A stretch of DNA of 64,000 bases from Macrostomum lignano (Eukaryota): assembly GCA_002269645.1 (NCBI GenBank), contig NIVC01002574.1, forward strand, positions 96,805 to 160,804, written 5' to 3'. The notes under the pieces are model-generated. The model was given only the letters and a program-made list of their open reading frames with translations. It was not told where the DNA came from and ran no database searches. A program made the position numbers and the translations under genes. Shown here piece by piece: positions 1,185-64,000 of the stretch. Every line of letters starts with the position of its first letter. The first letter of the stretch is position 1.

Positions 1185-1645
1185 TTGTTCAGTTTGATTC
1201 CGTTTGAGTTAATCCATTGTAACGTAATCCAGTTCAAGTTAATCCAGTTCGAGTTAATCCAGTGCGAGTTAATCCAGTTCGAGTTAATCCAGTTCGAGTT
1301 AATCCATTGTAAGTTAATCCAGTTCGAGTTAATCCAGTGCGAGTTAATCCAGTTCGAGTTAATCCAGTTCGAGTTAATCCATTGTAAGTTAATCCAGTTC
1401 GAGTTAATCCATTGTAAGTTAATCCTGTTCAATTTAATCCTGTTCAAGTTAATCCAGTTCAAGTTAATCCAGTTTGAGTTAATCCAGTTCGAGTTAATCC
1501 ATTGTAAGTTAATCCAGTTCGAGTTAATCCATTGTAAGTTAATCCTGTTCAATTTAATCCTGTTCAAGTTAATCCTGTTCAAGTTAATCCTGTTCAAGTT
1601 AATCCTGTTCAAGTTAATCCAGTTCAAGTTAATCCAGTTCAAGTA
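1185..1645. repeat. 15-bp minisatellite (AGTTAATCCAGTTCG)n with variants
   Basis: Direct reading. Confidence 0.95.
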
Positions 1646-2395: not shown

Positions 2396-3063
<668 letters not shown>

Positions 3064-7511: not shown

Positions 7512-7560
<49 letters not shown>

Positions 7561-37818: not shown

Positions 37819-38243
37819 ACCAGATGGGCCACTCAGCACATTTGCGTGTAAGCTACTTTCAGTTCAGTAGCAAGTTAAACAGAAGCATTTTAATGTATTT
37901 TTAAAGCCAAGGCTCATTTATTGCTCTTACCCCCCTCCCCCACTTAAACCTCCAACCGCGCCTTTCCACACTACCCCCCTCGCCCCGCCCACCCTAATTT
38001 TTATTGCCTTTCTCGGGATTCCAGCCTAAAGCGGCCACGTACATTTCAGTGGACTGGCTAATGTACATTACTGCCGAACCAATTAGCAAGCTGTTTACGC
38101 CTGCAAGCTTGGGCTTCTAAACTTATCAAAGTCATTTCAGCTGCCTTTATTTTTATAAAATAGCTTATGTATACTTCCTTGCTACTGAACTGAAAGTAGA
38201 AAGCTGTTTTACTAAGTATATATGCCTGAGTGGCCCATCTAGT
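37819..38243. mobile_element. MITE copy B, 425 bp, inverted relative to copy A
   Basis: TIR ACCAGATGGGCCACTCAG...CTGAGTGGCCCATCTAGT, TA flanks; internal sequence is the diverged reverse complement of 34428-34857. Confidence 0.8.
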
Positions 38244-39511
38244 TATTTTAGTATCTGTGATTGAAACTAATGAATTTGATGCATACAAAAAATTAAATTT
38301 TGTTAAATTACAAAAGCTTATTTTACCGATCATTAATTTGCGGGCCACCTCTAATGTACATATACACGCAGTTACTCAACTAAAATGTACTTGACAGTGA
38401 CCATTGTACTTTGTACGCTGGGAGAACTACGCACACATATGTATAAAAAATTAGGTCCGGTCAACAAATGCCTAGACGCACAGATAAAAGAACAACTTCG
38501 AAAAAACTTGCAACAAACAAAACTTTGTTTTTTTGTCGCCGGATTGACTGTCGCCGGATCGTCTTCTTGTCGCCTTTTTGACTAGAAAGCCCAATAGTAG
38601 AAAGTACCAAATATTAACTAGAACTGTTTCCAACTCAAGCAGGCCAAATAAAATTCAGAAAAATTCTAGGCTTAAGTAATCAGAATCCCCAAATTTACTT
38701 ATTCTCACGGATCTTTTTTAAGGTTAATTGTTTGTTTAAATGTGTCACTACTGACTCGATTATTTTAAAAGCTTTGTAGCAGAAAACTTTATAAAGATCG
38801 AGTAAGCTGCATTTATAGTAAATTAAAATTACAAATGGACAAATTCGCATTTAGTATTGACTTTTAATGCTAGTCTAATTTCTACAATAATTGCGAACTA
38901 AAGACAATTTTGCTCCCCGTATAAATTTACCAAACAACGTCTTTCGTTGACATTAATTGCGTAGAAAATTAAAAACAAATAAAAATTTGAAAGATTATCA
39001 TGAAAATTATTTTCCTGAAAGTGACAGTGTGGAGAATGTCTGTTCAGTATGCATTTTTTTGCTTTTTTAATTTATTCTTTTTTAAGTTTAAATAAATAAT
39101 TACGGTAGCAGTTTTTAACCATCTGCTGTATAAATCCTGGCCAGATTCATTTGTATTTAATATATCAGTAGTCATGTCAAGCAAATGAATTAGTATTTAT
39201 TTCTTCTTCTTAACTTTCCCAAATGTCCATAGAAATTATTGTAGCTTATTGTATTTAGCTTAGACTCAGACAATATGTTTTAATTGACTAAAATTTTCAC
39301 TAAAAACTCTTCAAAAATGAAACTTAAAAAAACAATAGGAACTATCAACTATCAAGAAAGTTAATCAACTTTCTTGCTTAGTTGATGCATCCTGAATTTA
39401 TTGGAAAACTCTGCTAAATACAGAATTAACCCAAAAAGAGGTTCAGATCAACAAGCATCAGTGTAAAAGATACAATACTTTCATGCTCCACCGCACTGCT
39501 ATCCGTCTCGC

Positions 39512-45943
<6,432 letters not shown>

Positions 45944-45944
45944 A

Positions 45945-46699
45945 GGTGTGACAGTGTGGCCATAGACTAATGATGTGTGAGACAGTTTGGCCATAGAATA
46001 ATGATGTGTGTGACAGTGTGGCCATAGACTAATGATGTGTGTAACAGTGTTGCCATAGACTAATGGTGTGTGTGTGACAGTGTTGCCATAGACTAATGAT
46101 GTGTGTGTGTGTGACAGTGTGGCCATAGACTAATGATGTGTGTGACAGTGTTGCCATAGACTAATGGTGTGTGTGACAGTGTGGCCATAGACTAATGATG
46201 TGTGTGTGACAGTGTGGCCATAGACTAATGATGTGTGTGTGACAGTGTGGCCATAGACTAATGATGTGTGTGACAGCGTGGCCATAGACTAATGATGCGT
46301 GTGTGTGACAGTGCGGCCATAGACTAATGATGTGTGTGTGTGACAGTGTGGCCGTAGACTAATGATGTGTGTGTGTGACAGTGTGGCCATAGACTAATGA
46401 TGTGTGTGTGACAGTGTGGCCATAGACTAATTATGTGTGTGTGACAGTGTGGCCATAGACTAATGATGTGTGTGTGACAGTGTGGCCATAGACTAATGAT
46501 GTGTGTGTTACAGTGTGGCCATAGACTAATGATGTGTGTGACAGCGTGGCCATAGACTAATGATGCGTGTGTGTGACAGTGCGGCCATAGACTAATGATG
46601 TGTGTGTGACAGTGTGGCCATAGACTAATGATGTGTTTGTGTGTGACAGTGTGACCATAGACTAATGATGTGTGTGTGTGTGTGTGTGACAGTGTGGCC
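45945..46699. repeat. About 30-bp minisatellite (GTGTGACAGTGTGGCCATAGACTAATGAT)n, interrupted by the Polinton
   Basis: Direct reading; last unit stops at GTGGCC. Confidence 0.95.
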
Positions 46700-47008
46700 A
46701 GTAGTATAGAAATAGACGCTTCTAGACCCAGAGCACTTTTTTAATGACCGTTTTAAGGGTCTAGAGGGGGGACACGGGGGGTAAATAAAAAAACACATCT
46801 AAACACCATTAATACATCTAATCACCCATAATCACCCCTAACAATAAAAATCACTTCCCAACACTTCCAAAACACTCCCCAACACTCCCCTCGCGTCCCC
46901 CCTCTTAAGACCTTACAAACGGTCATTAAAATAAGGTCTGATCTAGAAGCGTCTTTTTCTATACTACTACTCTATAACCCCTTGCCCGCGCCGCAGGCGC
47001 GAAGGGTC
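46700..47008 (+). repeat. Left terminal inverted repeat (about 309 bp) with an internal foldback
   Basis: 46981-47008 is the exact reverse complement of 63973-64000; starts AGTAGT. Full TIR length is inferred. Confidence 0.8.
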
Positions 47009-47025
47009 TTTTTCTGTTACTAAAA

Positions 47026-47340
47026 ATGACCCGAGTTTACACCTTTTCTGTTAGTGATACTTTTGAGACTGTTGCTAAAAATGCAGAGATAATAAAACAA
47101 CATATTTTGAATGGAATAATTGATGAAGTTTATTTAAAATATGACGACAAGCACGACCTAAAACTTTATCCATTAGAGCTAGATGAGATGTATGATTTAG
47201 AACAAGAGGGTGAGTTAATATTTCAACTTGGAGATTATTTAAATTCGGATGATTGGGAGGTTAGATCAACAGATTCCGAATCAACAAATAGTTCATATGA
47301 AACCAGTGATTCAGAGAATGAAAGTGAAATTTTTATGTGA
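47026..47340 (+). CDS. Polinton hypothetical protein, 104 aa, acidic C-terminus
   Basis: Open ORF with TAAAA-ATG start; family not recognised. Confidence 0.6.
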   Translation: MTRVYTFSVSDTFETVAKNAEIIKQHILNGIIDEVYLKYDDKHDLKLYPLELDEMYDLEQEGELIFQLGDYLNSDDWEVRSTDSESTNSSYETSDSENESEIFM

Positions 47341-47356
47341 AAAAAATATTTAAAAA

Positions 47357-47611
47357 ATGAACTATTATTCTATAACAGAAACGACATTTATTGTGAAAAA
47401 TATATATAAAAAAATGAAGGTAAATCGAACCCATGGTTCGCGTGCTTTGCACGATTACTCCTACATCGGAAATGTGCCGATTAATGAACTTAATGAAAAT
47501 TTAAGTTTGATAACAGTTGAACAAATGTCAATAATAATATTAGTAACAATTATAGTAATAATATTGTTTTTGTTTGTTATAAAAAATTTACTACCATGTT
47601 GTCTCAAGTAA
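47357..47611 (+). CDS. Small membrane protein, 84 aa, C-terminal hydrophobic helix followed by PCC
   Basis: IIILVTIIVIILFLFVI; carries an in-frame 30-bp hairpin insertion. Confidence 0.55.
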   Translation: MNYYSITETTFIVKNIYKKMKVNRTHGSRALHDYSYIGNVPINELNENLSLITVEQMSIIILVTIIVIILFLFVIKNLLPCCLK

Positions 47612-47621
47612 TTGTTCGAAC

Positions 47622-49229
47622 TTAGTTCGCTGATATTAGTTGGTTCTCATAAAACGAACCCAATATTTCTTCACCGTCCTTATCAGCAATTATATAGGTT
47701 GTAGGATTGGTATTTAAAACTTTACTGATAGTAAATTTCTCACTTATCTTCCAATATCCTTTTCTTCCTTTTTCAAACTTATCTTTCCATTTATAGATAT
47801 AAACAGAATCACCAACCTTAAAAGATTTCTTTTTATTTTTTTCAAATTTTCCAAAAGTAACTTTAACGTTTTCAGGATTGTTATAAGCTTGTTGAGGAGT
47901 CATCTTTATCGCCGAATGATATGAATTGTTATAATCTTTCACTACGTCTGGTAATATTTTTACCCATTTTTGGTTACCATTAAGACTAAACTGAAACCAT
48001 AATTTCTTACCTAAAGTTCTATTAAATCTTTCTATTAATGCGTTTTTACTCTCTCCATAAATAGAATAAATTTTATTAATATACTCCCCATTCGCGTCTT
48101 TTTTCCTTTCTTCTCCTTTTTCAAAATGATATAATTTATACATATGAGGATTGTAAAATTCTTTTCCTTCGTCAACACACAACCTTTCACTTTTTTCTCC
48201 AAGACTTCTAAAAGCAGCAGCAACCTCCTCTCCCTTTTTGGATTTTAAAGGAACAGCCCACGCGTATCGAGTAAAACCATCTAATATGGTTAAGATATAT
48301 TTATATCCTCTTTCGTTCGGCATCGACATTAAATCAGCATACCAAATTTCATTCTTTTTGAAGTTCATGATTTTTCTATAAAATTTCGGTTTTCGATATT
48401 CTTTATGAAGAATCTTTGCCTCATCAGAACTTAACCCACCACCACTTAACAACAAACACTCAACACAATTATTTCCATGTTGATTATAATTAATTCCCAA
48501 ACCAAATTTAACTTTAGACTGCAAGATCTTTTTAACCATCCACCTAGTTAATCTTTGCCCTACCGATAATCCCTGCAAGTTATCTAATCCTTGAATCATT
48601 TTTTGATCGGCTTCGTGTTTTAATCTTAGCGCTTCCTCGGGCGGGTTCTTATCAGCATCTCTGTATGCTAAGTCATGATAGTATGCCAACCAATCAATTC
48701 CATTTATGGGAATTGAATCGGCTTTTGGAGTGTCATCAGGATTTAATCTCAAATCTAAGCGAGTGCCGGGTAGTTTACCCCCAATCTTTCGAAAGAGGCT
48801 GGAGCACACCTTAAGCGGCGATAATTACCGCCCATCTCCGTCTGCTCTCTGAACCTTCTCCTTATATTTAAAATACTTAGGAGCTTGGCTGCGCATTGCC
48901 ACCGTGTCTTCAAGCTTTTTACCATCGAACCATAGGTTCGCGTGCAAAGCACGATTGGGAAGAGGAGTTACCTCTGTTCCTTCAAAAGATTTCTCAATTG
49001 AAGTGGTACTTGAAGCTGTATGACGGGTTTCACGCAATTTGGAGATGTCGCCACAAATAGTGACTAGCAAGGACATTGCCTTCCTCACTCAGGCCACGGG
49101 TTAACCTGTGAAGTTCATTGATGGTAGGTGTAGTTCCCCTGTATATTTACCAGTAGTAAAGATTGGTGGTAAGCTTGTTAATCCTTTTTGAACATCTAAA
49201 AATCCTCCTTCAAATACTATTTGGTTCAT
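47622..49229 (-). CDS. PLA2 (parvovirus VP1u-like)-integrase fusion, 424 aa after splicing; exon 1 49229-49104, exon 2 48770-47622
   Basis: TAAAA-ATG at 49229. Spliced junction GELHLPSMNFTG|PGTRLD, catalytic YYHDLAY and EADQ; rve triad WYADL / CVDEG / IERFNRTL; Polinton-type C-terminus FKVGDSVYI..FYENQL. Confidence 0.9.
48771..49103 (-). ncRNA. Group I self-splicing intron, IC1-like, 333 nt, no internal nuclease
   Basis: P1 U.G wobble (exon CAGGU with IGS GCCUG); P3 CAUCUCC/GGAGAUG; P AAAUUGCGUGAAA; Q AAUGCGCAGCCAAG; R GUUCAGAGAGCAGACGG; S AAGGUGUGCUCC; P7 G(A)GAGCA/UGCUCC; P8 and P9 hairpins. Removal restores the ORF and the GPG motif. Last base is A, not G. Confidence 0.88.
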
Positions 49230-49713
49230 TTTTAATGTTTAAAAAACATGTTTCTATCAATTTAATAATTTCTAAATATTGGCCACCATATAAAAAATTT
49301 AAAGCAAATTCCCCAGTTAACAAGGTAACTCCATTATCAAATACTTTTTGTACGGGGTTTTTAGTAGTATTATTAATGCAAATATAATATAAATCAAATT
49401 CGGGATTAACATATTTAAATTCTAATAACTTTTGAATATTTCTAAATCGACTTGATGAATTATCTGTGTTATCAGAAGATTTTAACTCTAACGCAACTTT
49501 TCTTTCTGTATGAATTAAATCAATTTTATTTACTTTTTCAAAACCAAAATGTTTAATAGCTAATAATTCATAAAGAGATCCAAGTCTCATTTGTATTGTT
49601 TTAATATGGTTTGAAATTATTAATTCATCTTGAAATATTTTATTTAGTATTCTGTCAGAACCAACTTTATCACAAATAGGCTTACAAAGGTGGTCTTTTA
49701 TTGTTTCATCCAT
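49210..49713 (-). CDS. PD-(D/E)xK nuclease, Eco47II/Sau96I restriction endonuclease-like, 167 aa
   Basis: KTIQMRLGSLYE, IDL..KVALELK, NTDNSSS resemble the Eco47II family pattern (from memory; needs an HMM search). Confidence 0.7.
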   Translation of the reverse strand: MDETIKDHLCKPICDKVGSDRILNKIFQDELIISNHIKTIQMRLGSLYELLAIKHFGFEKVNKIDLIHTERKVALELKSSDNTDNSSSRFRNIQKLLEFKYVNPEFDLYYICINNTTKNPVQKVFDNGVTLLTGEFALNFLYGGQYLEIIKLIETCFLNIKNEPNSI

Positions 49714-49740
49714 TTTATAAAAAATAAATTTAACAATTAA

Positions 49741-50424
49741 TTAAACACCAGTATGTCCAGCAGCTTTCGCAGCAGCTAAAACAAGTTTTCTAGGAGTTTT
49801 AAATCCATCACCAACAGCTGGTTTGTTATTTATAGAATTAACAATCCATTTATACAAGCTGGTATTTTTAACAGCTCCTCCTAAATCATCATAAAAAATT
49901 CTAGCACTTACTAAATCATTCTTAGTATAAAAATCAGGGTTAAACTTAACCCTAGGGTTAGTAATAATTCTATATGCTCCGCCCAATTCTCTATATAGTT
50001 CATTTCGATCTTTATCAACGTTACCAATTCGGTAATTATTATTACCTAAATCTGTCACAGCAATACTAGCTGGTACTCTTGGAAATTGTTTAACTTCTTC
50101 ACCCCTTTCTGCAGCCCTAATCTCTGCACGTCTAATCTCTGCAACTCTCAATTGAGCTTGATCAACATCATAAGCAGGCGGCTCATCCAAAATTTCATCC
50201 TCTTTTGGCTCAGTATTTGTAGCAATTTTTTCCAGAAGATCTTTATCTGTTTTTTCTAGTTCACTAATTTTCCCAGTAATAGGATTAACAAAAGGAGCAG
50301 CAAATCTTTCGCCAGCTAATTGTATTCCTAACTTTCTTTTTTGTAAATTTCTAACAAAATCAGAATATCTTTGCTTCTCTTTATAAATCGCTAACTCTCC
50401 ATCAACGTCCATAAATTGACTCAT
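49741..50424 (-). CDS. Polinton hypothetical protein, 227 aa
   Basis: Intact ORF, TAAAAA-ATG start, divergent from the capsid gene. Confidence 0.65.
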   Translation of the reverse strand: MSQFMDVDGELAIYKEKQRYSDFVRNLQKRKLGIQLAGERFAAPFVNPITGKISELEKTDKDLLEKIATNTEPKEDEILDEPPAYDVDQAQLRVAEIRRAEIRAAERGEEVKQFPRVPASIAVTDLGNNNYRIGNVDKDRNELYRELGGAYRIITNPRVKFNPDFYTKNDLVSARIFYDDLGGAVKNTSLYKWIVNSINNKPAVGDGFKTPRKLVLAAAKAAGHTGV

Positions 50425-50458
50425 TTTTTAACATAAAAAACTTTTTTAACTTAAAAAA

Positions 50459-51931
50459 ATGGCTGAAACAAAAACTATGTGGAGTGATAAATTTCATTTC
50501 AAAAAGCACCGACAGTATATTAATGAGGTCAGAGCAAGAGATTTAAATTATACCCTACCAACAAGTGATAATTCAAATAACTTTACTACTGGAACGGTAA
50601 CTTTTGACATCGGCGCAACCAACACTATATTGGATATGAAAAATGCGTTTTTCCGCGTTAGATGGTTGTATACTAGAAATGATGGAACTGCTCTTGCAGC
50701 CGGAGATATCGCAGATCGATCCGGAATAATAATAGAAAATGATTGGTTTTATAAATGTTTTTCCCAAGCTCAACTAACTGTTAATGGTGCTGAGGTTGAG
50801 ACATCATCAAACCCCGCAGAGATTAATGGAGTTTTGAAACATTTAAATTATACTTATTTATCAAAACAAGTTGGTGATAATGTTGGGTGGATGCCGGATA
50901 AAGGTAACGGTCAAGCAGTAGTTTTCCCTAATGTACAAAACGCAGCCGGTGCAGATACTGCAGCGCTAATTGTTTACCTTAATACAAACATAGTTCCAGT
51001 TGTAACCACTATGACTAATACAAAAGATATTAATACTGGTTTTATAGATCGTCAGAATAAATTCCCAGTCGCGGTTTTAACCACAGCAACAGCATATGAG
51101 CAGGACTTTTCAATCTTTCCACTATTTGGGTTTTTCTCACCAAATCGGGTATGGAAAGGATTAAAATTTGGGATACAGTTGCAAATATCTGGTGGATATC
51201 AGCCTAGGATACTTTATGGAACCTCAATTTCAACCGATATAGCAGTTCGTATAGATTCAATTCAATTAGTCGTACCAACTATTGAGGTAACAGCCCCACT
51301 TTTAAAACACATCGATAATCAGTTAACGCATGATCAGGAAATATTTTATTTGAATCGTCGACATTTTATGCGAACCATTAATAATAACCAGGATTCATTC
51401 CAGTGGCAAATACTGACATCAAAACGTCGGGTGAGATATATTTTTGTTTGGTTTAAGATAACAAATAGAAGGAGTAAAAGAGCAAATGGGGATTTATATT
51501 GGCTTCAATCCGGTGCCATAGCAGAACAAGCAGCCACCGCAACAGACAATGCGGCTGCAGCTATTAACGAGTTTAATGTTCAGAATATCCGCCTGCAGGT
51601 TGATGATCAATATTATCCGGTTAAAGACCCCCTAAATTTAAATATAGCAAATAATAATGTTAATGATTTTATAAAATATTATCAAGATTATGCCAAAAAT
51701 GAAGCGTATGCCGTCCCTCAGTACACACCCACAGAGTTTCTAAACATTCATCCAGTGGTTGTTTATGATCTAACGGCACAGAAAGAAAACGTAGCCAATA
51801 TTGGACTTAATTATATGTTAGAGATTAATAAAACTGGTAATCAGGCAATAGACGCACACGTATTGTTTCTAGAGGAATATATGTCAATTGCTAAAGCTGA
51901 TGGCACGATTGTTCGGGACGCGCCACTTTAG
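50459..51931 (+). CDS. Major capsid protein (double jelly-roll, Polinton PY-like), 490 aa
   Basis: Size, beta-rich pattern (TVTFDI..LDMKNAFFRV, FSQAQLTVNGAEVE, HPVVVYDLT, AHVLFLEE) and position before ATPase, penton and protease. Confidence 0.8.
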   Translation: MAETKTMWSDKFHFKKHRQYINEVRARDLNYTLPTSDNSNNFTTGTVTFDIGATNTILDMKNAFFRVRWLYTRNDGTALAAGDIADRSGIIIENDWFYKCFSQAQLTVNGAEVETSSNPAEINGVLKHLNYTYLSKQVGDNVGWMPDKGNGQAVVFPNVQNAAGADTAALIVYLNTNIVPVVTTMTNTKDINTGFIDRQNKFPVAVLTTATAYEQDFSIFPLFGFFSPNRVWKGLKFGIQLQISGGYQPRILYGTSISTDIAVRIDSIQLVVPTIEVTAPLLKHIDNQLTHDQEIFYLNRRHFMRTINNNQDSFQWQILTSKRRVRYIFVWFKITNRRSKRANGDLYWLQSGAIAEQAATATDNAAAAINEFNVQNIRLQVDDQYYPVKDPLNLNIANNNVNDFIKYYQDYAKNEAYAVPQYTPTEFLNIHPVVVYDLTAQKENVANIGLNYMLEINKTGNQAIDAHVLFLEEYMSIAKADGTIVRDAPL

Positions 51932-52015
51932 TGTCGCAGTGCAAAGCACGTCGCGCCATTGTAAAATGAGTGCAGGTCTCCGACCGTCGCGCCTATTTAA
52001 ATTATTTCTTTAAAA

Positions 52016-52809
52016 ATGGTAAAGGCAAAACACAATAAAATATTTCCAAATGATCCTTTTCTTTGTTTAGTAATCGGAGGATCAGGTAAAGGAAAAACAC
52101 ACTTTGTTACGATTTATTAACAACAGATGGAATGTTAGACTATAATAATTTAATAATTTATACTAATAAACCTAGAATAAAATATTATGAATTTCTTAAA
52201 CATGGATTAAAAAACAAATTAAAAAAAGATGTCTTGTTTAGAATGTTAAGAGCATATGAGCAATATGAGGATGATGACGAACCGCGATTTAATCTAGCAG
52301 ACATTGAGGATTTATGTAAAACAATGGCACAACAGCCAGAAAACATCACCGATCGCCCCGAAGGGTCGCGGACTTCGTCCGATCGAGCCCCAACAATTAC
52401 AATATCAAACCGATTAACTTATGACAAAATTCCAAAAAATGATAAAACACTAATTATATTTGATGATTGTATTAATGACGGAGATCAAGAATTGCAAAAG
52501 GAAATTTTTGTTAGTGGTAGAGGAGATGGAATTGGAGCTTTTTATCTTACTCAATCCTTTAGAGAATTAGAATCGATTATAAAAAAGAATGCTAGCTGTT
52601 GTGTAATGTTTGATTTAGATAACTATGATCTACAAAATATTCACGCGAGATTTAATCCTGGGTTGGATACAAAACCATTTAAAAGTATGTGTAAAAAAAT
52701 TTGGGATGATAGCCAATACAAACATATTTATATCAATCCGAGGTTAGAAAGGAAACATAGAATTTTAACAAATTTGATAAAAGAAGATAATGAGGAAGAA
52801 GAGACATAG
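52016..52809 (+). CDS. A32/FtsK-like packaging ATPase, 1-bp frameshift near 52108
   Basis: Walker A GGSGKGKT from ATG 52016, Walker B LIIFDD, FYLTQS and IIKKNA motifs. Confidence 0.85.
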
Positions 52810-52829
52810 CACAATTTCCCACTATAAAA

Positions 52830-53628
52830 ATGACTACAAATTTAGATACTATAAAACAATTGGTAGATCGAACTAATTCAAAATTTAGTACAACCTTACA
52901 GTTTATAATGACAACCAGTGAACAACGTATTCAATTGCGCGACCCGTTACAACTTGATCAAAGCCTAAGTTATCAAATAGGTTTGATACTATTTTCGGTT
53001 TTTAACATGCCTCAATTAATTAATGCAACAAATAATCAATTTAGATATTCTAAAGATTCCGGAGCCAATTGGACAACATTTAGCGTTAACCCAGGAGCGT
53101 ATAGCTATACTGATTTGAATGCTTATATAGAATGCTTATATAGAAGGAGAATTAACATCTAACGGCGATTGGGTATCAGGCGCAATTGTTATAGGTGTTG
53201 ATTTACCATCTGGCAGATTCACACTATCACTAGGATCCGGATATCAGGTTGATTTCACAATTGCAAATTCACTCAGAACCATACTTGGATTTAATTCTCG
53301 AATAGTTACCACATCAAGCACCGGCGATACAGTTGGAAATATTGAGGGTGGTGTTAATACAATTAATATAACAACCGACATATCAAACGGCGGTTATATA
53401 ACAGATAATAATGGAGTTTTGGTTCAACGTGGAATTATTTATTCCATCCCATTTCTTGCTGTTCCAATTGGAGAGAAAATGATTGTATCACCTCAAACCC
53501 CAATATATTACCCATTAAATCAATATAATGTTCAATCAATTTATATTAGGATTGTAGATGAAACCGATAGATTAATAAGTTTTGGTGGGCAATCAATAAC
53601 AGTAATTTTACGTATAAAACAGGTTTAG
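52830..53628 (+). pseudogene. Minor capsid protein (penton) disrupted by a 13-bp tandem duplication GAATGCTTATATA near 53117-53142
   Basis: Removing one copy joins the two ORFs; C-terminus IIYSIP..PIGEKMIVSP..IYYPL..IYIRIVDETDRLISFGG is penton-like. Confidence 0.8.
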
Positions 53629-53672
53629 CCGAACCAAAGGTTCGAGGACATCGTCCGTTTCCCATAGTAAAA

Positions 53673-53882
53673 ATGGGTAATCGAACAACATGTTCGCGTG
53701 CAAAGCACGATAATAATAATAATTTACTAAAAAAACAATCAGAAAAAGTTAAAAAAGCTGAAGATAATTACGAACTAGAACTAGCAAAATTAAGGCAGTT
53801 ACAAGCTGATAAAATAAGAAAGGAATTGTTAAAACCCACACCTACGAAACTAACTAAAACCAAGAGTTTTTCAGGAACATAA
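53673..53882 (+). CDS. Small basic protein, 69 aa, possible N-myristoylation (MG)
   Basis: TAAAA-ATG start; in-frame hairpin insertion. Confidence 0.45.
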   Translation: MGNRTTCSRAKHDNNNNLLKKQSEKVKKAEDNYELELAKLRQLQADKIRKELLKPTPTKLTKTKSFSGT

Positions 53883-53883
53883 A

Positions 53884-54327
53884 ATGACCATGACGTGGGA
53901 TGATTTTAAACAAAGATATGGAACAGACACAACAAGCAATATCGAATTAACAAATTGGGCGCGGCAGTTAAAAATAAAACCATTCAGATGTGTGATGCGG
54001 GATGAGATAAAAGACTTACCACAATATGGATCTTACATTGTCAACATCGAAACTACAAAAGAAAACGGGGCTCATTGGTCGGCAGTTTATTCCAAACCTA
54101 AACTTGTTTATTTTTTTGATTCATACGCGCTTCCTCCGTTACAGGAAATAAAAGATAAATTTAATCATACTAAAAATCGTTTATGTGGAGATCATCACGA
54201 ACAGTTTCAAACCTTTGATAAAAGTTATTGCGGACAAGCAGCGTTATATTTTTTATATCGACTTTCGAATGAAGCTCGTGTAAACCACAAAGTATTTAAG
54301 ACTATCATGCAAAGCATGCGAACCTAA
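53884..54327 (+). CDS. Adenain-like cysteine maturation protease, 147 aa
   Basis: GAHW (His), FFDSY (Asp), QFQ (Gln), YCG (Cys). Confidence 0.9.
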   Translation: MTMTWDDFKQRYGTDTTSNIELTNWARQLKIKPFRCVMRDEIKDLPQYGSYIVNIETTKENGAHWSAVYSKPKLVYFFDSYALPPLQEIKDKFNHTKNRLCGDHHEQFQTFDKSYCGQAALYFLYRLSNEARVNHKVFKTIMQSMRT

Positions 54328-54364
54328 GGTTCGATTTTAGACTCTATAAAATAGACAGTAAAAA

Positions 54365-56236
54365 ATGATATTTTCTGGAACACCCTCATGGAACGGAACA
54401 ACAAGTACTGGTGGTGGTACGTCTGGTGGAATAAGTGTTACCTTCGGAGATAATCGATATATTAATGAAGATGAAGGTTATAAAAAAAGTGAAGTTGATA
54501 CTAAACTAAATTTGAAACGGAATGTTGCAGATTCCTATACCAAAACTGAAATCGATACTTCATTAAATCTTAAAAGAGATATTAGCGATTCATATACAAA
54601 ATCAGAGGTTGACACTGGGTTAAATTTAAAAAGAGATATAACTGATTCTTATTCTCGAACTGATTCTGATTCGCGTTATGTTCAAGCCACCGCAACCGGA
54701 ACTTTAGATATGGATAACAATCGAATTATAAATGTTGCAATTACAACGAATAACTCGGTAGTTGATAAGAACTATGTCGATAATCAGGTTGGTAGTCGTA
54801 ACGGCAATATCAATATGAATAATTTTAAATTAACAAATTTATTATTTGGAACAGAGGCCACAGACTCGGTCAATTTAGGGCAGGTCAACGCTCGAGCTAA
54901 TGTAACCGACGCCGATATTTTTGCCACGCCGCTTACATCAAATACTTCAAATCCAGATGTTGTTCTTACAGCATCCGAAAATACCAACGATGCTTTTCGA
55001 GTTGGAGATGGAAGCCTTGCGACACAATGGTCACCAAATACCGGAACCACAACCAATATGGAAATTCAATTTGAATTTTTAGGTTATAATCGAAGAATAA
55101 ATGAATTAAGAATCACAGGCAGCGCAACTATTGATATTCCATCGGGATGGTCGGTTCGTGCAAAAAATGTTGCTACCGATGCATGGACGGTATTACGAAC
55201 GTCGGGATCACCAATTCAAGCAACTTCATTTGCGTTAACTAATTTAACGGTTAATTTTTGGAAATATTATAGCGTTTTATTCCCAACTGGTGGCACCGCT
55301 ACACAACCTATCGAGGTTCGTCTAATACAATTATTTGAACACCGAGTTGAAATTCAAGATCTTAATTGGCCAAATGAAATACTATCTGCTACCCCGCGAG
55401 CGTACGTAGATCAGGTAGCAACTCCAACTTCAAATGGTAGAATGTCTGCCGGTGATAAAAATAAATTGGATAATATTCCCGCGATTGATGCCGCATTATT
55501 CGAGCCAGTAATTTGTAATTGGACTGGATATCAAAATCCAACAACCGCTGGAGATATATATCCAGTTGGTTCTTTAATTGGCGACGCTTCTTATATCGAT
55601 TATCAAAATGGAGCTAGAATTACTCGTGAAACTGGTGGAGTAAGTGGGGCATTACAATTCAATTTCACACATTTTCAAAATATATCTGCGTCTTTCTATT
55701 TCCGAGTCGCTAATTCTACAGGAGATGGTGCAGATGCGGTTTGGTTTTATGCATATTGTCACGAACGCCCAACAAGTGAAGGTGGGACTGGATTAACAAC
55801 CGACGCCGGATTGATAGTTTTTGCAAGTGAGTGGCATGATAAATTTGGCGTTGTATGGAGTAATAAAAAATCAGACGGATCAAGCCGCGCGGATGTTAAT
55901 ACTGACGCAGATCAAACGGTAGATTATGCAAATATTGATAACGGCGATTGGCATTTATTTGAAATTAATATTTTAAATCAAAGGGTTTGGTATCAATTAA
56001 ATTCATACAATGTTTCGGCCGATTCTTATACCCTCATTGGGCAGAACGTTTTCACATATGATAGTGGCACTTGGGGAACGTTGGATAAGACTGGAACCCT
56101 TATGGGTTTTGGTGCTCGAACTGGAGGATCGGATGCTGCACATTTTATTCGTGGCGCTGGCGTTTGTGGTAGCACATCGTTTGGTTATGTTTTTCCCTCT
56201 ACTGCTTATTTGGAAAAACCTCCTACTCAAATATAA
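54365..56236 (+). CDS. Fibre/receptor-binding-like protein, 623 aa
   Basis: SYTKxEVDT repeats, NMNNFKLTNL and MSAGDKNKLDNI fibre motifs, discoidin-like segment, C-terminal L-type lectin-like GDGADAVWF..GFGARTGG..H. Confidence 0.7.
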   Translation: MIFSGTPSWNGTTSTGGGTSGGISVTFGDNRYINEDEGYKKSEVDTKLNLKRNVADSYTKTEIDTSLNLKRDISDSYTKSEVDTGLNLKRDITDSYSRTDSDSRYVQATATGTLDMDNNRIINVAITTNNSVVDKNYVDNQVGSRNGNINMNNFKLTNLLFGTEATDSVNLGQVNARANVTDADIFATPLTSNTSNPDVVLTASENTNDAFRVGDGSLATQWSPNTGTTTNMEIQFEFLGYNRRINELRITGSATIDIPSGWSVRAKNVATDAWTVLRTSGSPIQATSFALTNLTVNFWKYYSVLFPTGGTATQPIEVRLIQLFEHRVEIQDLNWPNEILSATPRAYVDQVATPTSNGRMSAGDKNKLDNIPAIDAALFEPVICNWTGYQNPTTAGDIYPVGSLIGDASYIDYQNGARITRETGGVSGALQFNFTHFQNISASFYFRVANSTGDGADAVWFYAYCHERPTSEGGTGLTTDAGLIVFASEWHDKFGVVWSNKKSDGSSRADVNTDADQTVDYANIDNGDWHLFEINILNQRVWYQLNSYNVSADSYTLIGQNVFTYDSGTWGTLDKTGTLMGFGARTGGSDAAHFIRGAGVCGSTSFGYVFPSTAYLEKPPTQI

Positions 56237-56252
56237 AATATTTCTATATAAA

Positions 56253-56552
56253 ATGGCTTTTAGTAGAACTCCATCGATGCGGCAAAATAATGTTATTATT
56301 CCTATTCCTAAACAAGAATCAAATATAAAAACATTCAAATCTCATACCAAATTTTTATTTAGTACTGTAAATGTTCAGGATAATAAGAAGCTTCAAGAAT
56401 TAATTAAGTTATTAAAAAATCATATTATACTTCAAGAGTTTTGGAAAATTGGATTTAAATGGGAGAAAAAAGAAAGAATCACTCCAATACAATACCTATT
56501 AAGCTCCGGGCAAATACCAAAGAGCGTGGGGAATTCATTTTGGTGCTATTAA
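56253..56552 (+). CDS. Hypothetical protein, 99 aa (ATG at 56253)
   Basis: TATAAA-ATG start within the listed ORF. Confidence 0.5.
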   Translation: MAFSRTPSMRQNNVIIPIPKQESNIKTFKSHTKFLFSTVNVQDNKKLQELIKLLKNHIILQEFWKIGFKWEKKERITPIQYLLSSGQIPKSVGNSFWCY

Positions 56553-56564
56553 AAATAGACGAGA

Positions 56565-57204
56565 ATGTCGGTATCTGAAGCAGATAAATGGGAACGCGAC
56601 CGGTTCAACCAACGTAAAGGTCACATGTTAAGTAATGTTGATCGAATAAATTATGATTATGATTTATATAGTAAAAAAGTAAGAAGAGTTTCAAACCATA
56701 TAAGAAATATGGACTTTTTCAATATTGGATTTGGAAGCTTATCAATGTTATGTGTAATCGTTTTAGGTATTTTACAATCTATTCCAACTCTTAATTTATC
56801 TCAATTATTTTTAGGTATTTCAATTGGGTCAATATCAGGTTTTGAATTGATCAGGAACTTATCAATACTTTTAGCAATTAAATTATATCTTAAAAAAAGA
56901 AAGGAAAAATATAAATCATTAAGAGATGTTGCCAAGCAATATAAAAATCAATTATATTTATATGTGCAAAAAAATATTGGATGACGGAGAGATAACGATT
57001 CATGAATTATCAACCGCGGTTGAATTATATGAAAAATATTTAAAAGATAGAAATAGAATTTTAGATGTTGAAACTTTTACCGATATGGAATTAAAAGAAT
57101 TACGTTTGGACAAACCCAAAGCTCCACCTATAGAAACATTAGGTATTTACGAACCTGAAACTATTGCTACTGGGCACAAAGCCCGCGGTCAGGAAGTGCT
57201 GTAG
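56565..57204 (+). CDS. Two-TM Polinton accessory protein, frameshifted in an A-run near 56970
   Basis: Two hydrophobic helices, then KEKYKSL..LDDGEIT..YEKY pattern. Confidence 0.6.
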
Positions 57205-57238
57205 AACTTAATGTTGTTTAATTTATTTAATGCATATG

Positions 57239-57700
57239 TTATATATTCTTCCCAAAGTGGTAACTCTCTTCTGATCTAGGTTTAAATTTTTTATCAATAC
57301 ATAAAAATTCCAATGACTTTTTCAATAACATTTCGTTAGGTATGTTACCTATCCTTATAAACTTTGTATTCTCTCGAATAAGAAAATTGAAATAATATCC
57401 AACTAAAATTAAAATCCTTTCAGAGTCTTTCGAACTTAATCCCTTTCCTTTATTTAAATGGAAAAAGTTATTATATAAATAAACATTATTTCCGGGAATT
57501 AAAATTGGATCAGAAATGTCTCTTGTAAGATTTCTTAAAATTGTGTTTTTAAAATAGTAATATGAGTTTTCAATCTTTTTTGTTTTTTCAAATTGATATA
57601 TTTTAGAACATGAATAACACATATGATATATATCTCCGTTTGCTGTTTGCCCTCTGTGCATAGTCACATTACATTTATTACAAACATAAATGTCTTTCAT
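57239..57700 (-). CDS. Hypothetical protein, 153 aa, N-terminal CxxC..CxxC zinc ribbon
   Basis: CNKC and CYSC. Confidence 0.55.
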   Translation of the reverse strand: MKDIYVCNKCNVTMHRGQTANGDIYHMCYSCSKIYQFEKTKKIENSYYYFKNTILRNLTRDISDPILIPGNNVYLYNNFFHLNKGKGLSSKDSERILILVGYYFNFLIRENTKFIRIGNIPNEMLLKKSLEFLCIDKKFKPRSEESYHFGKNI

Positions 57701-57726
57701 TTTTTTGTTATTTTTTTAGATTAAAA

Positions 57727-58054
57727 ATGGAGAGCTGGTTCAAAACCGATTCTAATGTGATTAATTATCTCACACCCAATATGTTGGAGAATAAAGAATA
57801 TAATATTGTATGTTTGAGACAGGTTAAATTTATTGGACTTCAATCATATTTTTACAATTAGATGGGCAAAAAATTTTATGTCTAAGCGGAGATGATGTTA
57901 AAAATTTTCCTGTTTTAGTTATTAATAAACCTAAAGCGTTTGTTATGAAATACAGCAACGAGGGTGGATTGCAATTTAAACTAAAACAAACAAATAATAA
58001 AAAGAGTGATAGGACTGTAAAATTGGCGGCTGTTTGGGAGGATGACCGAATAAG
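57727..58054 (+). CDS. Probable small frameshifted ORF (MESWFKTDSN...)
   Basis: TAAAA-ATG start; continuous only with indels. Confidence 0.3.
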
Positions 58055-58073
58055 TTAAATTTTTTATAAGAAA

Positions 58074-58412
58074 ATGGATACGATAAAAATCCTTATCACT
58101 AAAGAGCGTGAACTTAATGATATTAATAAAAAAATAAATATAATTATATCTCAGAAATATCATGAGTATGGGGACGATATGTTTCCCATCCGATATGAGA
58201 TAGATAAAAGAAAACGTTTTTTAAGACAAGATATTGTTTATGCTGAAATAGTAATTGAAATTGAAATAGATAGATTGGTTAGAAAAATAAAAAAACTTAG
58301 GAAAAAAATAAAGGATTGTTTAAGTTACCCTGCCGACTGTGAGGATAATTGGTGCTCAATAATATATGAAATTGAAATGTTAATGATTTGCTCAAACAAT
58401 TACATGCTTTAG
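58074..58412 (+). CDS. Hypothetical protein, 112 aa
   Basis: Intact ORF. Confidence 0.5.
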   Translation: MDTIKILITKERELNDINKKINIIISQKYHEYGDDMFPIRYEIDKRKRFLRQDIVYAEIVIEIEIDRLVRKIKKLRKKIKDCLSYPADCEDNWCSIIYEIEMLMICSNNYML

Positions 58413-58538
58413 TTTTTTACAGACCGATAAGTAATTTTTCTGTTAATCTCTTCCAGTTATTCAAGACTTTTTCCTTATTTAATTTTTTAAGTTCTTTTGG
58501 AAATGTTGAATAATAATTATCTATATCTTTTTCATATT

Positions 58539-61500
58539 CTAGAAATGTATTATATTCACAATCACATTCGATTCACAATCACAATCGTAATAATAATTAT
58601 TTATTGCCGCTTTGTATTCATTATATTTGCTTATTATATCTTCTTTTTGTTTTTTATCTTTTATCATATTTTTTATCTCTTCTTTTAAACCATATGGATA
58701 TGTTTTAATTTTATCATCTAAATACTTTTATCATCAAATGGACTTAATGTTTTTTTATCTGTCTCGATGACAAACATCTGATGCTTATCTGAATTTAATC
58801 GATATTGTGGAGCATGATAATTTTCAATTGTATTAAGGTAATCTAAAAGTACGTTTTTATAATCATCAAATGTTATCTTTTTTACTGCTGCTCTTGATAC
58901 CCCTTTTATTTTTTTTACCTCTCCCTCCTGTCCTAAAACCTTAAATGCATAGCATTTTGATCTTATTGCTATAAACTCGGTTATGATTTTGCTATTTAAT
59001 TCATCTTTCATTTTAAGTACAACTTTTTTATTTTGATCTGATTTTAAAGGATGGTTATCCGGATAGTCGGAGGTATCCAATGTATCCTTAATTTTTTCCA
59101 TATCTTTATAGACATCGAACCTTTGGTTCGCGGACTCCGTCCGTCATCTGTTTCAACCTTAAATACCAAACTGTCGGTGTCTGCATATATTGGATAGTTA
59201 TCTGGCCATGTTTTATTTATAACATCATAATAATATTCATACATTACCAGCTTTGCATAATCTAAAACAACCATTCCAATAAATATTGGTTTAAGAAATT
59301 TTGTTGTTTTATTTCTCATATGAATACCCATAAAGTTATCATCAAATTTTATAAAGTCTTTAAAGTTAGGTTTTGAGAAATATTTCTTTGCTTTATCAAT
59401 ATCCTTTTCTAAATGGAATTGGGTTCTATCTCTAATATTTTCAACCGTTTTTCCATAAAAAGCATTATTCATTAATTTCCAATAATCTTTCTCAAAATTT
59501 GTTTTTGACATCTGTCTCTGATTTGAATTAAAGTCAATATATTTAGCTAACCAATCTTCCTCAATAAACGATATTGTTCGATGTACTTTAGACACTTTTA
59601 ATCCCTGCTTTTTCATAAAATTGTAGAAGCTTATAATGCACTACATAGTTTTTCTTATCATGTAAATTTAATATTAATTTTTTTGTTGCTAGATGTTTTG
59701 CATTATCTACTTTAAGATAATCTTTTTGTGTTTGTGATAAATCATCTTCATTAACTGAACAATGCTCTGGAGCTAAAGGATATTTATATGTTTTTGCTTT
59801 TGCTTCCCGAGTATATTGCAAATCCACTTCTACGATACAGCCCCTTCCTTCGGGAATATTTTTGTAATAATCGGGGTCATCTTCCCATTGGAAATCAGCT
59901 ATTGGTAATTTTTGTTTCATACAACCACCGTATAAATTGTTTGCATCTAGATATAATACATATGATGATTTTTCTTTTTTATTATAATTTGGTAGATATT
60001 TATTATTTACTTTAGTATATCTATCTCCTAGTACACCCGAGAATCCGCCGCGAATTCCTCTCTCAATCATTAACAACATATCATGATCAGTTAGTAAATC
60101 AATCTTAACATCTGTATGTTTCAAACCACAAGCCCATGTTAATCCGGTGCACTGAAACAATATGCGGGATCAATTTTAAAATTCTCATATGTATGATTCC
60201 TAAAGTTTTCAAATGCATCAGCTAATAGGAGAACATCTGCTTTAAGATATAGATTATGATAATCTTTAAATGTTTTACAATTAAAGTATTTCCATACTTT
60301 TTGAGCGTGTTCATAATCCGATTCACTTATGTTTGTTTGTGATAATGTTGAATAAAACTTTTCAATTGGGGGTAATTCGGTATGAAAAAATACGTCTTCA
60401 GATGTTACATATTCATATGGGTAGATGCCCTTACGAGTTAATAGCATTAGTTCTTCCTCGGATAGTTTTTCTTTTTGAAACGATTCAATAGATTGGAAAG
60501 TTTTTTTTACTATTTCTAAATCCCATGGTTTTGGAACTAATGATGAAACAACATTTGCTAAAGATGTTGATAAGAATCTCAAGGAATCTAGAAAAACTAG
60601 ATGGGAGTATTTCTTACCATATGTTATTGATATGTAATTTTCTGATGTTTTAGGTAATATATTTATTTCATATTCATCCTTTCCTAAATGAAGCAATTCT
60701 CGAACTAAGAAATGAAAATCATATCCGGAACCATTATGAAAAAATACTGGTATTTCCTTACATCCTTTTCCTTCTTTTGCATTACATGATCTACATGCTG
60801 CCCCTCGATAATTTCCTGTTAGATGACAATGTTCTCGTATCTTATTATTCTTACTTAAATGTCTTTTGCACATAAAACAATTTGTTGCATTTTTATAATT
60901 GTCTCTATCCTTATTTGTCATATTAATATTTTTTGATAATTTATCATATTGATTTTGAATATATTCAAATACATTTACTAATGATTCTGCCATGTGCTTA
61001 GCTGCATCATTACCGTGGTAAGTAATCATCCTTGATTTAAATATATGATCAGCTACGAGTGTACATATATACAATAACTATTCGGAAACTGTTGTGCCAA
61101 TTTTTTTGTGCATTCACCGTCATCAGATACCGTCTGTGATTCTTTTAAGGGAACATTTGTTGCTTCAAAATCAGCATATATTACTATTGGTTTTTTAACT
61201 GCCATATAATGTTGTTGGAACTTTAGGGTTGCATCTTCAGATGCTGGCATTATAGCATTAGTAAATTTGTGATCTAAACAAAATCGTTGATGATTTTTAA
61301 GAGCTGTTTCATCCTTTTTAAATGTAAACAATTTCTACATAGTGGATATCTATTTCTATTTTCTCTTAAAAAGAACTAATATCTTTTATGTATATATAAT
61401 GTGTTTCATTTTCGCGCTGCATGTACAAAAGATCGATTTGATCTGGTGCTGTTATATCAGTTGCTGGCTTAACAAGATAACAGTTTTCTTATACCATTCT

Positions 61501-62354
61501 GGATCGACTTGAATTTCTTCTAGATCTTTGGTTCTTCAATTGTAAACACATTAATATTTAAACCATTCATTTTTTCAATCTTATATATATCATCTATTGC
61601 TACTGGGTATGATATGTTTTTCATTATTATTTCATCCTCATATTGTCTATAATTATATATTTTATTAATGTGTGATTCTACTTGATTGTGATATTTATGA
61701 ATTAATAAACACCATAATAAACATTTATTATCTTTATTGTCTGGATTTATAATCATAGGTGATTTAAATTTGAGCTTCATATGTGATCGTCCTTTAAGAA
61801 TTTCTATGGTGCAATCTTTACTATTGCTGAATTACAGGATACAAATATAAACCCAGATCCGTTTTCTGTCATCTTATCTATCCATTCATCAAACTCAGCT
61901 TCTATTTGATCGAATTGATTGTTGTAATTTCCCATTGATAAATGTTTTATATGATTCTTGTGAAAAGTTATTTATTACTTCAATTTCTGAATTTGCATTA
62001 AGAATATTTGGTTTTTTAAATTCTGTTTCAACTTCTATTTTATACTTAATTGGCTGTCGTTTGTTATTTGGCCTTATAGTATAATTGTTTAATATGGTCT
62101 TTAATTTATCTTTCATTTGTTTAAAATATTCTTTATAATTTGTATTTATATCTATATCTATATATATTACTTCAGCTCCATTTTGTCCTTGTGGTTGGGG
62201 GTTATTAATATCATTTAATTGTCTTTCTAAACGTATCTCATTTTCTGCCCTAATTCTTGCTTCTATTTCAGCCCTATCTTCGTTGTGCATCGATTTGAGC
62301 TATTAATTGTGCTCTAAGTTCAGGGTTGTCGATTTGAGCTAAAATTGCTTCCAT
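58539..62354 (-). pseudogene. polB: Protein-primed family B DNA polymerase split by many small indels
   Basis: IYADFEA (ExoI), EHCHLTGNYRGAAC (endonuclease VII-like insert), FHNGSGYDFH (ExoII), YLKADV (ExoIII), YLDANNLYG, KLMNNAFYGK, YADTDS; ends approximate. Confidence 0.9.
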
Positions 62355-62399
62355 TTTATAGAATAAATTTATATAATGTATTTGAATTATTGATTTTTT

Positions 62400-63760: not shown

Positions 63761-63972
63761 TTCAGATTTTGCATATGTGTAACGTGTGTCATTTTTTGTT
63801 CTATTTTTAGTAACAGAAAAAGATTGTCTGCATTCCATTTAGACCAGATTTTAGACCAAATTTTGAAAACGAAAAACCAAAACGATAGTCTAGTTTTGTT
63901 TGGTCTAAAATCTGTCTAAATGGAATGTTGGGTGGGTAGGTTGAGCTGACTATAAATAGCTTCTATCTTTCC

Positions 63973-64000
63973 GACCCTTCGCGCCTGCGGCGCGGGCAAG
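63973..64000 (-). repeat. Inner start of right TIR (truncated by window end)
   Basis: GACCCTTCGCGCCTGCGGCGCGGGCAAG is the reverse complement of 46981-47008. Confidence 0.85.

Follow-up and report, generated by a model that had tools for sequence, protein, structure and literature searches.

How does a mobile element that encodes a restriction-type nuclease escape its own enzyme in the absence of a methylase, and what part might a neighbouring intron play in that escape? The question is raised by a Polinton-like element in a 64,000-nt stretch of the Macrostomum lignano assembly GCA_002269645.1 (contig NIVC01002574.1, positions 96,805 to 160,804 of the forward strand); we call this whole stretch the window and give its features in its own coordinates. 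An initial annotation had proposed that the intron of the element's PLA2-integrase gene splits the one GGNCC site that the element cannot avoid, and so immunises the element against the adjacent nuclease. From the window and its relatives, we consider it likely that a clade of Polinton-like viruses (PLVs) carries, in its PLA2-integrase gene, a mobile group I intron paired with a GGNCC-cutting restriction-type nuclease, with protection coming from site loss combined with intron insertion. The steps of cleavage and homing in this explanation are ones that we infer from sequence.

A group I intron separates Gly from Pro in the PLA2-integrase gene

The features concerned are as follows.

47622..48770, minus strand: exon 2 of the PLA2-integrase gene, coding for what remains of the PLA2-like domain (PGTRLD...HDLAY) together with the rve integrase core and a C-terminal domain.
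48771..49103, minus strand: group I intron without an open reading frame (ORF), 333 nt, exactly between GGT (Gly) and CCC (Pro).
49104..49229, minus strand: exon 1, 42 codons, ending ACA GGT, where GGT is the Gly of the PLA2 Ca-loop.
49210..49713, minus strand: free-standing Eco47II-family (PD-(D/E)XK) nuclease ORF, 167 aa, whose stop overlaps the exon 1 ATG (49229-49227) by 20 nt.
49741..50424, minus strand: upstream neighbour gene, 227 aa, whose homologue in the relative L002 directly precedes the integrase gene.

The intron-less proteins P0010 and P0013 have N-termini homologous to exon 1, which runs into a stop codon after GGT, while the ORF at 47622..48809 holds CCC GGC ACT CGC TTA GAT, coding for PGTRLD. 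The intron-less homologue P0010 (71% identity) reads straight across the junction (...YNFTGPGTRLELRLNPD, a stretch also given as ...GELHIPGYNFTGPGTRLELRLNPD), with the DNA ACT GGC CCA GGA, a GGCCC site; because of this read-through, we take exon 1 as real and exon 2 as starting at CCC GGC (48770). The P0010 alignment thus sets the exon ends, and the spliced junction is NFTG-PGTRLD in protein and GGT-CCC in DNA, which contains GGTCC. The same GGT CCC junction had been read in the initial annotation, and the end of exon 1, the homology to P0010 and eight relatives all bear it out; the overlap noted there between the stop of the upstream gene at 49210 and the PLA2 start was likewise found, at 20 nt. 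Exon 2 matches the Pfam rve family (E = 1.7e-7) and, weakly, Phospholip_A2_4. The combination of PLA2 and rve domains is widespread, with more than 1000 homologues, and PF08398 and PF00665 are present in most of the matches listed.

The sequence between the exons is an RF00028 group I intron, predicted from its sequence to be self-splicing. In a local scan RF00028 matched 48780-49113 with 60.8 bits (gathering score 50; E = 7e-15), and the intron of the relative L001 scored 65.3 bits. The RNAalifold consensus of six introns contains 69 pairs, 18 of them with compensatory changes, and P1 co-varies with the exon, reading CAGGU/GCCUG in the window group and UUAGGU/GCCUAA in the L003 group. The exon ends in GGU, its U paired to G in P1, in all eight loci where the 5' junction is present. 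A canonical 3' splice determinant precedes the 3' exon in 8/8 relatives; the window copy carries one substitution in it and may therefore no longer splice correctly.

The intron bounds were set by alignment with the eight relatives, and the 3' end of the Rfam match (48780) falls 9 nt short of the boundary that homology sets. A boundary at 48780, which is in frame and would add three extra codons, was rejected because the introns of the eight relatives end directly before CCN and the intron-less homologues are without the insertion. We also rejected the 227-aa ORF as the true 5' exon, an arrangement that would place the nuclease inside a larger intron, since exon 1 matches intron-less N-termini and L002 keeps the 227-aa gene separate. 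A scan of the whole window at Rfam gathering thresholds missed the window intron, which was recovered by scanning 800 nt (48600-49400). The introns of L003-L006 were likewise missed by a 60-kb Rfam scan at E <= 0.001, and speed filters can hide introns within long AT-rich queries.

Family relatives place the nuclease with Eco47II

The upstream gene had been likened to the GGNCC-cutting enzymes Eco47II and Sau96I, and at the level of its family the likeness to Eco47II holds. RE_Eco47II (PF09553) was matched at E <= 0.01 by 10/10 members of the nuclease family alignment (best 4e-7), the nuclease of L007 carries a precomputed PF09553 match, and that of L090 scores 25.1 against the cutoff of 25.9. 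A profile search of 1.84 billion representative proteins returned 282 relatives; all ten that were sampled are RE_Eco47II proteins, eight of them over the cutoff. The residues D65, E76 and K78 of the D...ExK motif are invariant in the family alignment and nearly invariant in a wider one. Modelled with AlphaFold (AF2), the window nuclease reached a predicted local distance difference test score (pLDDT) of 89.1 and a predicted template modelling score (pTM) of 0.80. The best full-length Protein Data Bank (PDB) match that Foldseek found for this model was EcoO109I (1wte/1wtd), with template modelling (TM) scores of 0.66-0.69 and E = 2e-4 for 1wte; a fold search of BFVD added little.

Sequence searches with the nuclease gave no match in NCBIfam or the PDB, and neither did searches with the PLV nuclease alignment of prokaryotic genomes, tblastn searches of phage and plasmid collections, or IMG/VR searches with the PLV nuclease and integrase alignments. 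No cluster names were found for members of the nuclease family. The assignment of RE_Eco47II to the PD-(D/E)XK superfamily comes from PMC3424549, which lists the family as bacterial; GGNCC is given as the cutting site of an Eco47II homologue (PMC10305163), and EcoO109I recognises RG^GNCCY (PMC3089450). Three independent lines, namely the family, the closest solved fold and the word lost by carriers of the nuclease, agree with one another, so that GGNCC is the predicted target.

GGNCC and Gly-Pro are nearly absent from nuclease-bearing elements

The 17-kb element of the window contains no GGNCC, against 11.8, 18.2 and 14.5 sites expected from models of order 0, 1 and 2. The word is absent from 46001-64000 and is lacking at both intron-exon junctions, which upholds the earlier observation that the element has no other GGNCC; all 96 sites of the window lie in its 46-kb host part, where 114-135 are expected. 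Across all 11 nuclease-bearing element stretches (95 kb) we counted 2 sites where 41-56 are expected, one in the Gly-Pro codons of L007 and one in L005, outside a retrotransposon that has inserted there. Depletion had been expected to accompany the nuclease and the intron across related elements, and it does: the 80 nuclease-less relatives are near normal, with GGNCC at 0.72-0.96 of expectation, as broken down here by GC content.

Nuclease-less controls, GC < 0.30: 58 kb, 26 GGNCC observed, 27 expected.
Nuclease-less controls, GC 0.30-0.36: 64 kb, 45 GGNCC observed, 56 expected.
Nuclease-less controls, GC > 0.36: 143 kb, 142 GGNCC observed, 198 expected.

We also scanned 96 palindromic patterns (4-mers, 5-mers with a central N and 6-mers) in five whole nuclease-bearing contigs, namely the window element, L001, L003, L006 and L007. 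GGNCC ranked as the most depleted of the 96, with 1 site against 41.6 (order-1) or 30.3 (order-2) expected (P ~4e-17), and each of the four words that it comprises was seen 0-1 times against 10-17 expected. CCNGG, which has the same composition, is not depleted in nuclease-bearing elements (63 against 55, or 1.14 of expectation). AGNCT was the second most depleted palindrome (72 against 160 at order 1 and 107 at order 2), a much weaker depletion than that of GGNCC.

Any Gly-Pro codon pair spells GGNCC, and the loss extends into the proteins. Among 22,255 residues of nuclease-bearing elements, Gly-Pro occurs once against 33 expected and Pro-Gly 26 times; the control proteins hold 97 Gly-Pro and 229 Pro-Gly. 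At the Ca-loop of the PLA2 domain, the Gly-Pro site has been removed in every nuclease-bearing element stretch but L007, in nine cases by an intron at GGT-CCN and in two by replacement of the proline (GAQ, GVG), whereas Gly-Pro, and hence GGNCC, is kept in 54 of the 56 control loops that could be read. The nucleases of the ten further element stretches are 30-63% identical to that of the window, and over such divergence sites should come back unless selected against.

Intron and nuclease are arranged in several ways among relatives

The comparison loci were contigs that encode nuclease homologues. In eight of these relatives (L001, L003-L006 and L091-L093) the nuclease is encoded by an ORF within the intron, placed between P2 and P3. 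The insertion point is GGT-CCN in 9/9 introns, those of the window and the eight relatives, and the intron ends directly before CCN GGN; L020, a truncated metagenome contig, shows the identical 3' junction of intron and then CCN. The intron-encoded nuclease ORFs run on into the intron core, which accounts for the odd C-terminal tails of the nuclease proteins in databases. In the window, the intron is without an ORF and the nuclease gene stands between the 227-aa gene and exon 1. These two genes, the 227-aa gene and the integrase gene, adjoin in L002, which has neither nuclease nor intron, so the nuclease ORF is itself an insertion between them. The initial annotation was therefore right about the free-standing layout of the window, which proved to be the minority state: the eight relatives with the nuclease inside the intron have the form of a classical mobile intron.

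Two further relatives, L008 and L090, carry a free-standing nuclease at the same position, have no intron, and show a proline-free loop (FTGAQTNLD in L008 and YLGVGNPLD in L090). L007 carries a divergent member of the nuclease family (30% identity) at another place in the element, and its loop reads YLGPG, with no intron. The presence of the intron differs among close relatives, P0010 and P0013 being intron-less and the window and L001 intron-bearing, and intron-less alleles keep GGNCC at the insertion point (GGCCC in L002, GGGCC in L007, and 54/56 of the control loops). A neighbour-joining tree of the nucleases was built without support values and was not used to decide the direction of ORF movement.

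Two of the relatives show damage of their own. In L004 the intron-encoded nuclease (7421-8018) is split over two frames by one frameshift, with the intron and the integrase exons conserved. A polyprotein gene of the long-terminal-repeat retrotransposon type (protease, reverse transcriptase, RNase H and integrase) is inserted in L005 at 6343-9975 and shows L005 to be an old integrated copy.

PLV carriers have no methylase, unlike giant-virus homologues

No methylase domain was found by Pfam among the scanned ORFs of the window element, so that the cognate methyltransferase of a type II restriction-modification system was not found there, and a C5-methylase-like ORF was found in 0/13 PLV loci as against 55/57 loci of giant-virus type. 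The same nuclease family is frequent in contigs of giant viruses (Nucleocytoviricota): 54 IMG/VR loci carry it, and 53 of these have a C5-methylase within 5 kb. GGNCC is mildly low in the giant-virus loci (204 against 298 expected). Because the PLV carriers are without a methylase, their protection would have to come from the absence of sites.

One locus filed as 'uncultured archaeon' (L094, CABMDW010000092.1, 1932-6426) contains a major capsid gene of nucleocytoplasmic large DNA virus (NCLDV) type, a PARP-domain gene, and an Eco47II-type nuclease adjoining a tandem C5-methylase. To judge from these genes, it looks like a mis-binned giant-virus contig.

A restriction-type nuclease that may drive intron homing

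In the explanation that we favour, the nuclease would cut GGNCC, as its family and closest solved fold do, and the element would protect itself by carrying no GGNCC sites. Synonymous change could clear the word everywhere but at Gly-Pro pairs, and the remaining Gly-Pro site would be destroyed by the intron, which parts GGT from CCN, or in other lineages by replacement of the proline. Intron-less relatives that keep GGNCC there could then be cut by the enzyme at the insertion point and elsewhere. In relatives that are already purged, such cutting would favour copying of the intron (homing, with a collaborative layout in the window), and in unpurged DNA the nuclease would act like a restriction enzyme. 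Most relatives encode the ORF within their intron, and the most fitting description of the unit is therefore that of a mobile group I intron carrying a restriction-type homing nuclease. As the only target remaining in a purged clade would be the intron insertion site, the state seen in L007, the enzyme could act in homing among relatives and in restriction elsewhere.

A wider claim may be built on this, which we offer tentatively and think could well be wrong: that a restriction enzyme was turned into a homing enzyme by site loss, serving for single-site homing within the purged clade and as a methylase-free weapon against unpurged DNA (rival PLVs, and giant viruses without a matching methylase), at the cost of a ban on Gly-Pro across the proteins of the element. 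If so, action as a restriction weapon could be one molecular basis of PLV interference with giant viruses.

Several points weigh against a mobile intron with a GGNCC-cutting nuclease. A 5-bp cutter would shred unpurged competitors instead of promoting precise homing; homing endonucleases are expected to have a long, tolerant recognition site of about 14-40 bp, and the genome-wide loss of a 5-bp word argues for a short one. The specificity of the nuclease is read from its family, its fold neighbour and the site loss, and by itself the window nuclease reaches 18.1 bits for RE_Eco47II (E = 0.0022), short of the Pfam cutoff of 25.9. L007 carries its divergent nuclease while keeping one intact GGNCC in its GPG codons, the only such site in its 14.7 kb. 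A nuclease-bearing relative with intact GGNCC and intron-less GPG codons is what the initial annotation had named as able to overturn its proposal, and L007 supplies this in part. L009 has no GGNCC against 4.6-7.3 expected, with no nuclease in the 20 kb read of its 35-kb contig, so that depletion could be imposed from outside or by the attack of nuclease-bearing relatives. As a few ENA samples and a single clade supply many of the loci, shared ancestry inflates the number of apparently independent cases. In the window copy, the gene for the protein-primed DNA polymerase B (pPolB) has at least 4 frameshifts and a second gene has 1; with one substitution in a splice determinant besides, this copy may no longer work.

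The nuclease could instead be mainly a weapon against foreign DNA of giant viruses, hosts or rival elements in the replication compartment, with the intron a passive patch that does not home. Restriction enzymes of chloroviruses are thought to degrade host DNA, and a 5-bp specificity would suit bulk degradation, the 46-kb host part of the window offering 96 sites. Some elements have a free-standing nuclease and no intron (L007, L008 and L090), and PLVs have been reported to lower giant-virus yield (PMC12220804). We nevertheless find this unlikely as a full account, since an ORF inside the intron, as in eight relatives, is the signature of a homing unit, and since the intron comes and goes among relatives as close as P0010, at 71% identity, and P0013, both intron-less. 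Use as a weapon also overlaps with a mobile intron whose nuclease restricts unpurged DNA, and does not exclude it.

GGNCC loss might also be imposed from outside, by a GGNCC restriction-modification system of giant viruses or hosts, the intron nuclease then being a homing endonuclease of the usual kind, whose long target overlaps the Gly-Pro codons. The same nuclease family together with a C5-methylase is common in giant-virus contigs (L094 and 53/54 IMG/VR loci), and the depletion of L009 with no nuclease in the part read would fit such pressure. Against this, depletion follows the presence of the nuclease, the 80 nuclease-less relatives standing at 0.72-0.96 of expectation, and out of 96 patterns the avoided word is the predicted specificity of the element's own enzyme. 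To our knowledge, moreover, all known homing-endonuclease families tolerate long sites without a genome-wide purge. We regard outside pressure as quite improbable.

That the window holds an inactive nuclease pseudogene beside a dead intron, with GGNCC absent through AT-richness and codon usage, would accord with its 32.5% GC, the frameshifts in pPolB and another gene and the altered splice determinant, but is very improbable and already largely refuted by the distribution data: composition-aware models expect 12-18 sites, CCNGG is undepleted, the nuclease ORF is intact with its catalytic residues conserved, and the pattern recurs in ten further element stretches whose nucleases are 30-63% identical to that of the window. 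An addiction module, which the initial annotation had raised as another possibility, gained no supporting feature.

Relation to known systems

The mobile intron with its restriction-type nuclease resembles several known systems in part. In cyanophage S-PM2, the free-standing F-CphI and the ORF-less psbA group I intron take part in collaborative homing (Zeng et al. 2009; Bonocora and Shub 2009, cited in PMC11296320 and PMC6083498). The window shares with this pair a free-standing nuclease whose neighbour gene is interrupted by a group I intron without an ORF, as well as a predicted target that spans the insertion site of intron-less alleles; the intron-encoded ORFs of the relatives fit the path from free-standing to intron-encoded that has been proposed for collaborative homing. 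It differs in that the host is a eukaryotic virus-like element, the nuclease is of a type II restriction family rather than of Endo VII type, and the predicted site is 5 bp. With a site so short, the carrier genome would have had to lose every GGNCC.

I-Ssp6803I is a PD-(D/E)XK homing endonuclease of a group I intron and recognises a long site. It shares with the relatives a restriction-fold nuclease within a group I intron, the ORF of the window lying outside the intron, and unlike the PLV carriers its host genome is not known to have been purged of any short word. The PDB search by sequence revealed no kinship with it. Phage genomes are known to lose short palindromes selectively, and classically the pressure is a host enzyme. 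In the PLV carriers, by contrast, the avoided word matches the element's own encoded enzyme, and avoidance reaches the proteins, where Gly-Pro is nearly eliminated. PD-(D/E)XK is listed among six families of homing endonucleases (PMC6083498).

With Eco47II and EcoO109I the PLV nucleases share the Pfam family RE_Eco47II, the EcoO109I fold (TM 0.69) and a GGNCC core that is the word the elements avoid (PMC10305163, PMC3089450). Bacterial Eco47II members come with a C5-methylase (Eco47II-DCM4, PMC10305163), whereas the PLV loci are without one and their nuclease gene is tied to an intron. Restriction-modification pairs of giant viruses (chlorovirus type) have the same nuclease family; there the nuclease adjoins a C5-methylase, and in the PLVs protection would come from site absence.

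Group I introns of PLVs were reported in 2025 from Paulinella micropora, Desmodesmus armatus and Rhodomonas lacustris cluster C3 (RF00028, 309-376 bp), and are said to interrupt an unannotated gene for a protein of ~50 aa near the capsid gene (PMC12220804). That ~50-aa gene resembles the 42-codon exon 1, which makes these introns candidates for being the same as ours. Cluster C3 shares an rve integrase and a cysteine protease with the window element (PMC12220804); the gene content of the element resembles that of the cluster C3 PLVs, and any link between them would be a guess. The text of PMC12220804 does not contain 'PLA2' and does not link the introns to a nuclease, a PLA2-integrase or site avoidance, and in our literature searches we found no paper joining PLVs or virophages with restriction-site avoidance.

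If our explanation is correct, it would account for the group I introns of PLVs by naming the gene they interrupt (the PLA2-integrase), the point at which they insert and the nuclease that goes with them; none of this is given in PMC12220804 or in any other paper that our searches found. A type II restriction family recorded as bacterial would then occur methylase-free in eukaryotic virus-like elements, protected by near-total loss of its target word. Close relatives would show three stages of a proposed route from restriction enzyme to mobile intron: a free-standing nuclease with no intron, a free-standing nuclease with an ORF-less intron, and an intron-encoded nuclease. Conflict among PLVs, and between PLVs and giant viruses, would also gain a concrete candidate mechanism in this nuclease.

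The element and its surroundings

Further features of the window are these.

46981 to at least 64000: Polinton-like element, AT-rich (32.5% GC), with zero GGNCC, embedded in GC-richer eukaryotic DNA.
48925..48954, minus strand: hairpin mini-insert of ~30 nt within a peripheral intron loop, missing from the introns of five aligned relatives.
52830..53880 (bounds approximate), plus strand: homologue of a 253-262-aa gene of the relatives, broken into two pieces in two frames by 1 frameshift.
58718..61780 (bounds approximate), minus strand: pPolB gene with an Endonuclease_7 domain, broken into five collinear pieces in alternating frames.

On the strength of its gene set (capsid, ATPase, protease-like, pPolB and rve integrase) and its terminal inverted repeat, the element is a Polinton-like virus or Polinton as judged from sequence. 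The repeat pairs 46981-47008 with 63973-64000, is at least 28 nt long and extends past the end of the window. The genes are those for a capsid, a Pox_A32-like packaging ATPase, a protease-like and a fibre-like protein, pPolB with an Endonuclease_7 domain, and the PLA2-rve integrase; Pfam matches were obtained for rve, the Pox_A32-like ATPase and DNA_pol_B_2. The capsid gene has homologues with a DJR-like domain in L003 and L008, the protease-like gene was assigned from position and size only, and the 253-262-aa gene was named penton-like from position only, because the capsid and ATPase genes are its neighbours. We detected no tRNAs in the element and no group I introns in it beyond that of the PLA2-integrase gene.

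The five collinear pieces of pPolB, in alternating frames, imply at least 4 frameshifts. The nuclease, capsid and ATPase genes are still open, as are both exons of the integrase. The frameshifted genes and the substituted splice determinant suggest that the window copy is probably a decaying integrated relic; indel errors in the assembly are a possible alternative source of the frameshifts.

An Endonuclease_7 (HNH-type) domain is present near the pPolB N-terminus across the PLV group, at 60139-61074 (minus strand) in the window, at 390-3416 and 5122-7863 in L003, and from 18018 to the locus end in L009; L003 thus has two large pPolB genes with this domain. At 8257-8390 in L003, a palindrome of ~120 nt scored over the gathering score for MIR7504 on both strands, and this match is most likely a long AT-rich hairpin and not a microRNA.

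Outside the element, the host part of the window yielded no other PLV fragments, and one of its ORFs codes for a PB1-ZZ-UBA protein, which marks the host as a eukaryote. A repetitive host stretch at 45563-46798, just beyond the left end of the element, translates into THTSLVYGHTVTHT-like units across several short ORFs. AT-rich host islands (25-34% GC) lie at 5001-7000, 24001-27000 and 38001-39000; GGNCC is not depleted in them, and they show no similarity to the element or to proteins of PLVs.

The mini-insert in the intron is one of five copies of a GC-rich double-hairpin mini-repeat of ~30 nt, all of them in the element (47422-47455, 48925-48954, 54304-54337 and two that are degenerate); none was found in the 46-kb host part or in 93 related loci. 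One copy preserves its stem through a two-sided change (CGTGC/GCACG against CATGC/GCATG), and the mini-repeat could represent either a mobile insert of miniature size or a hairpin with a regulatory role.

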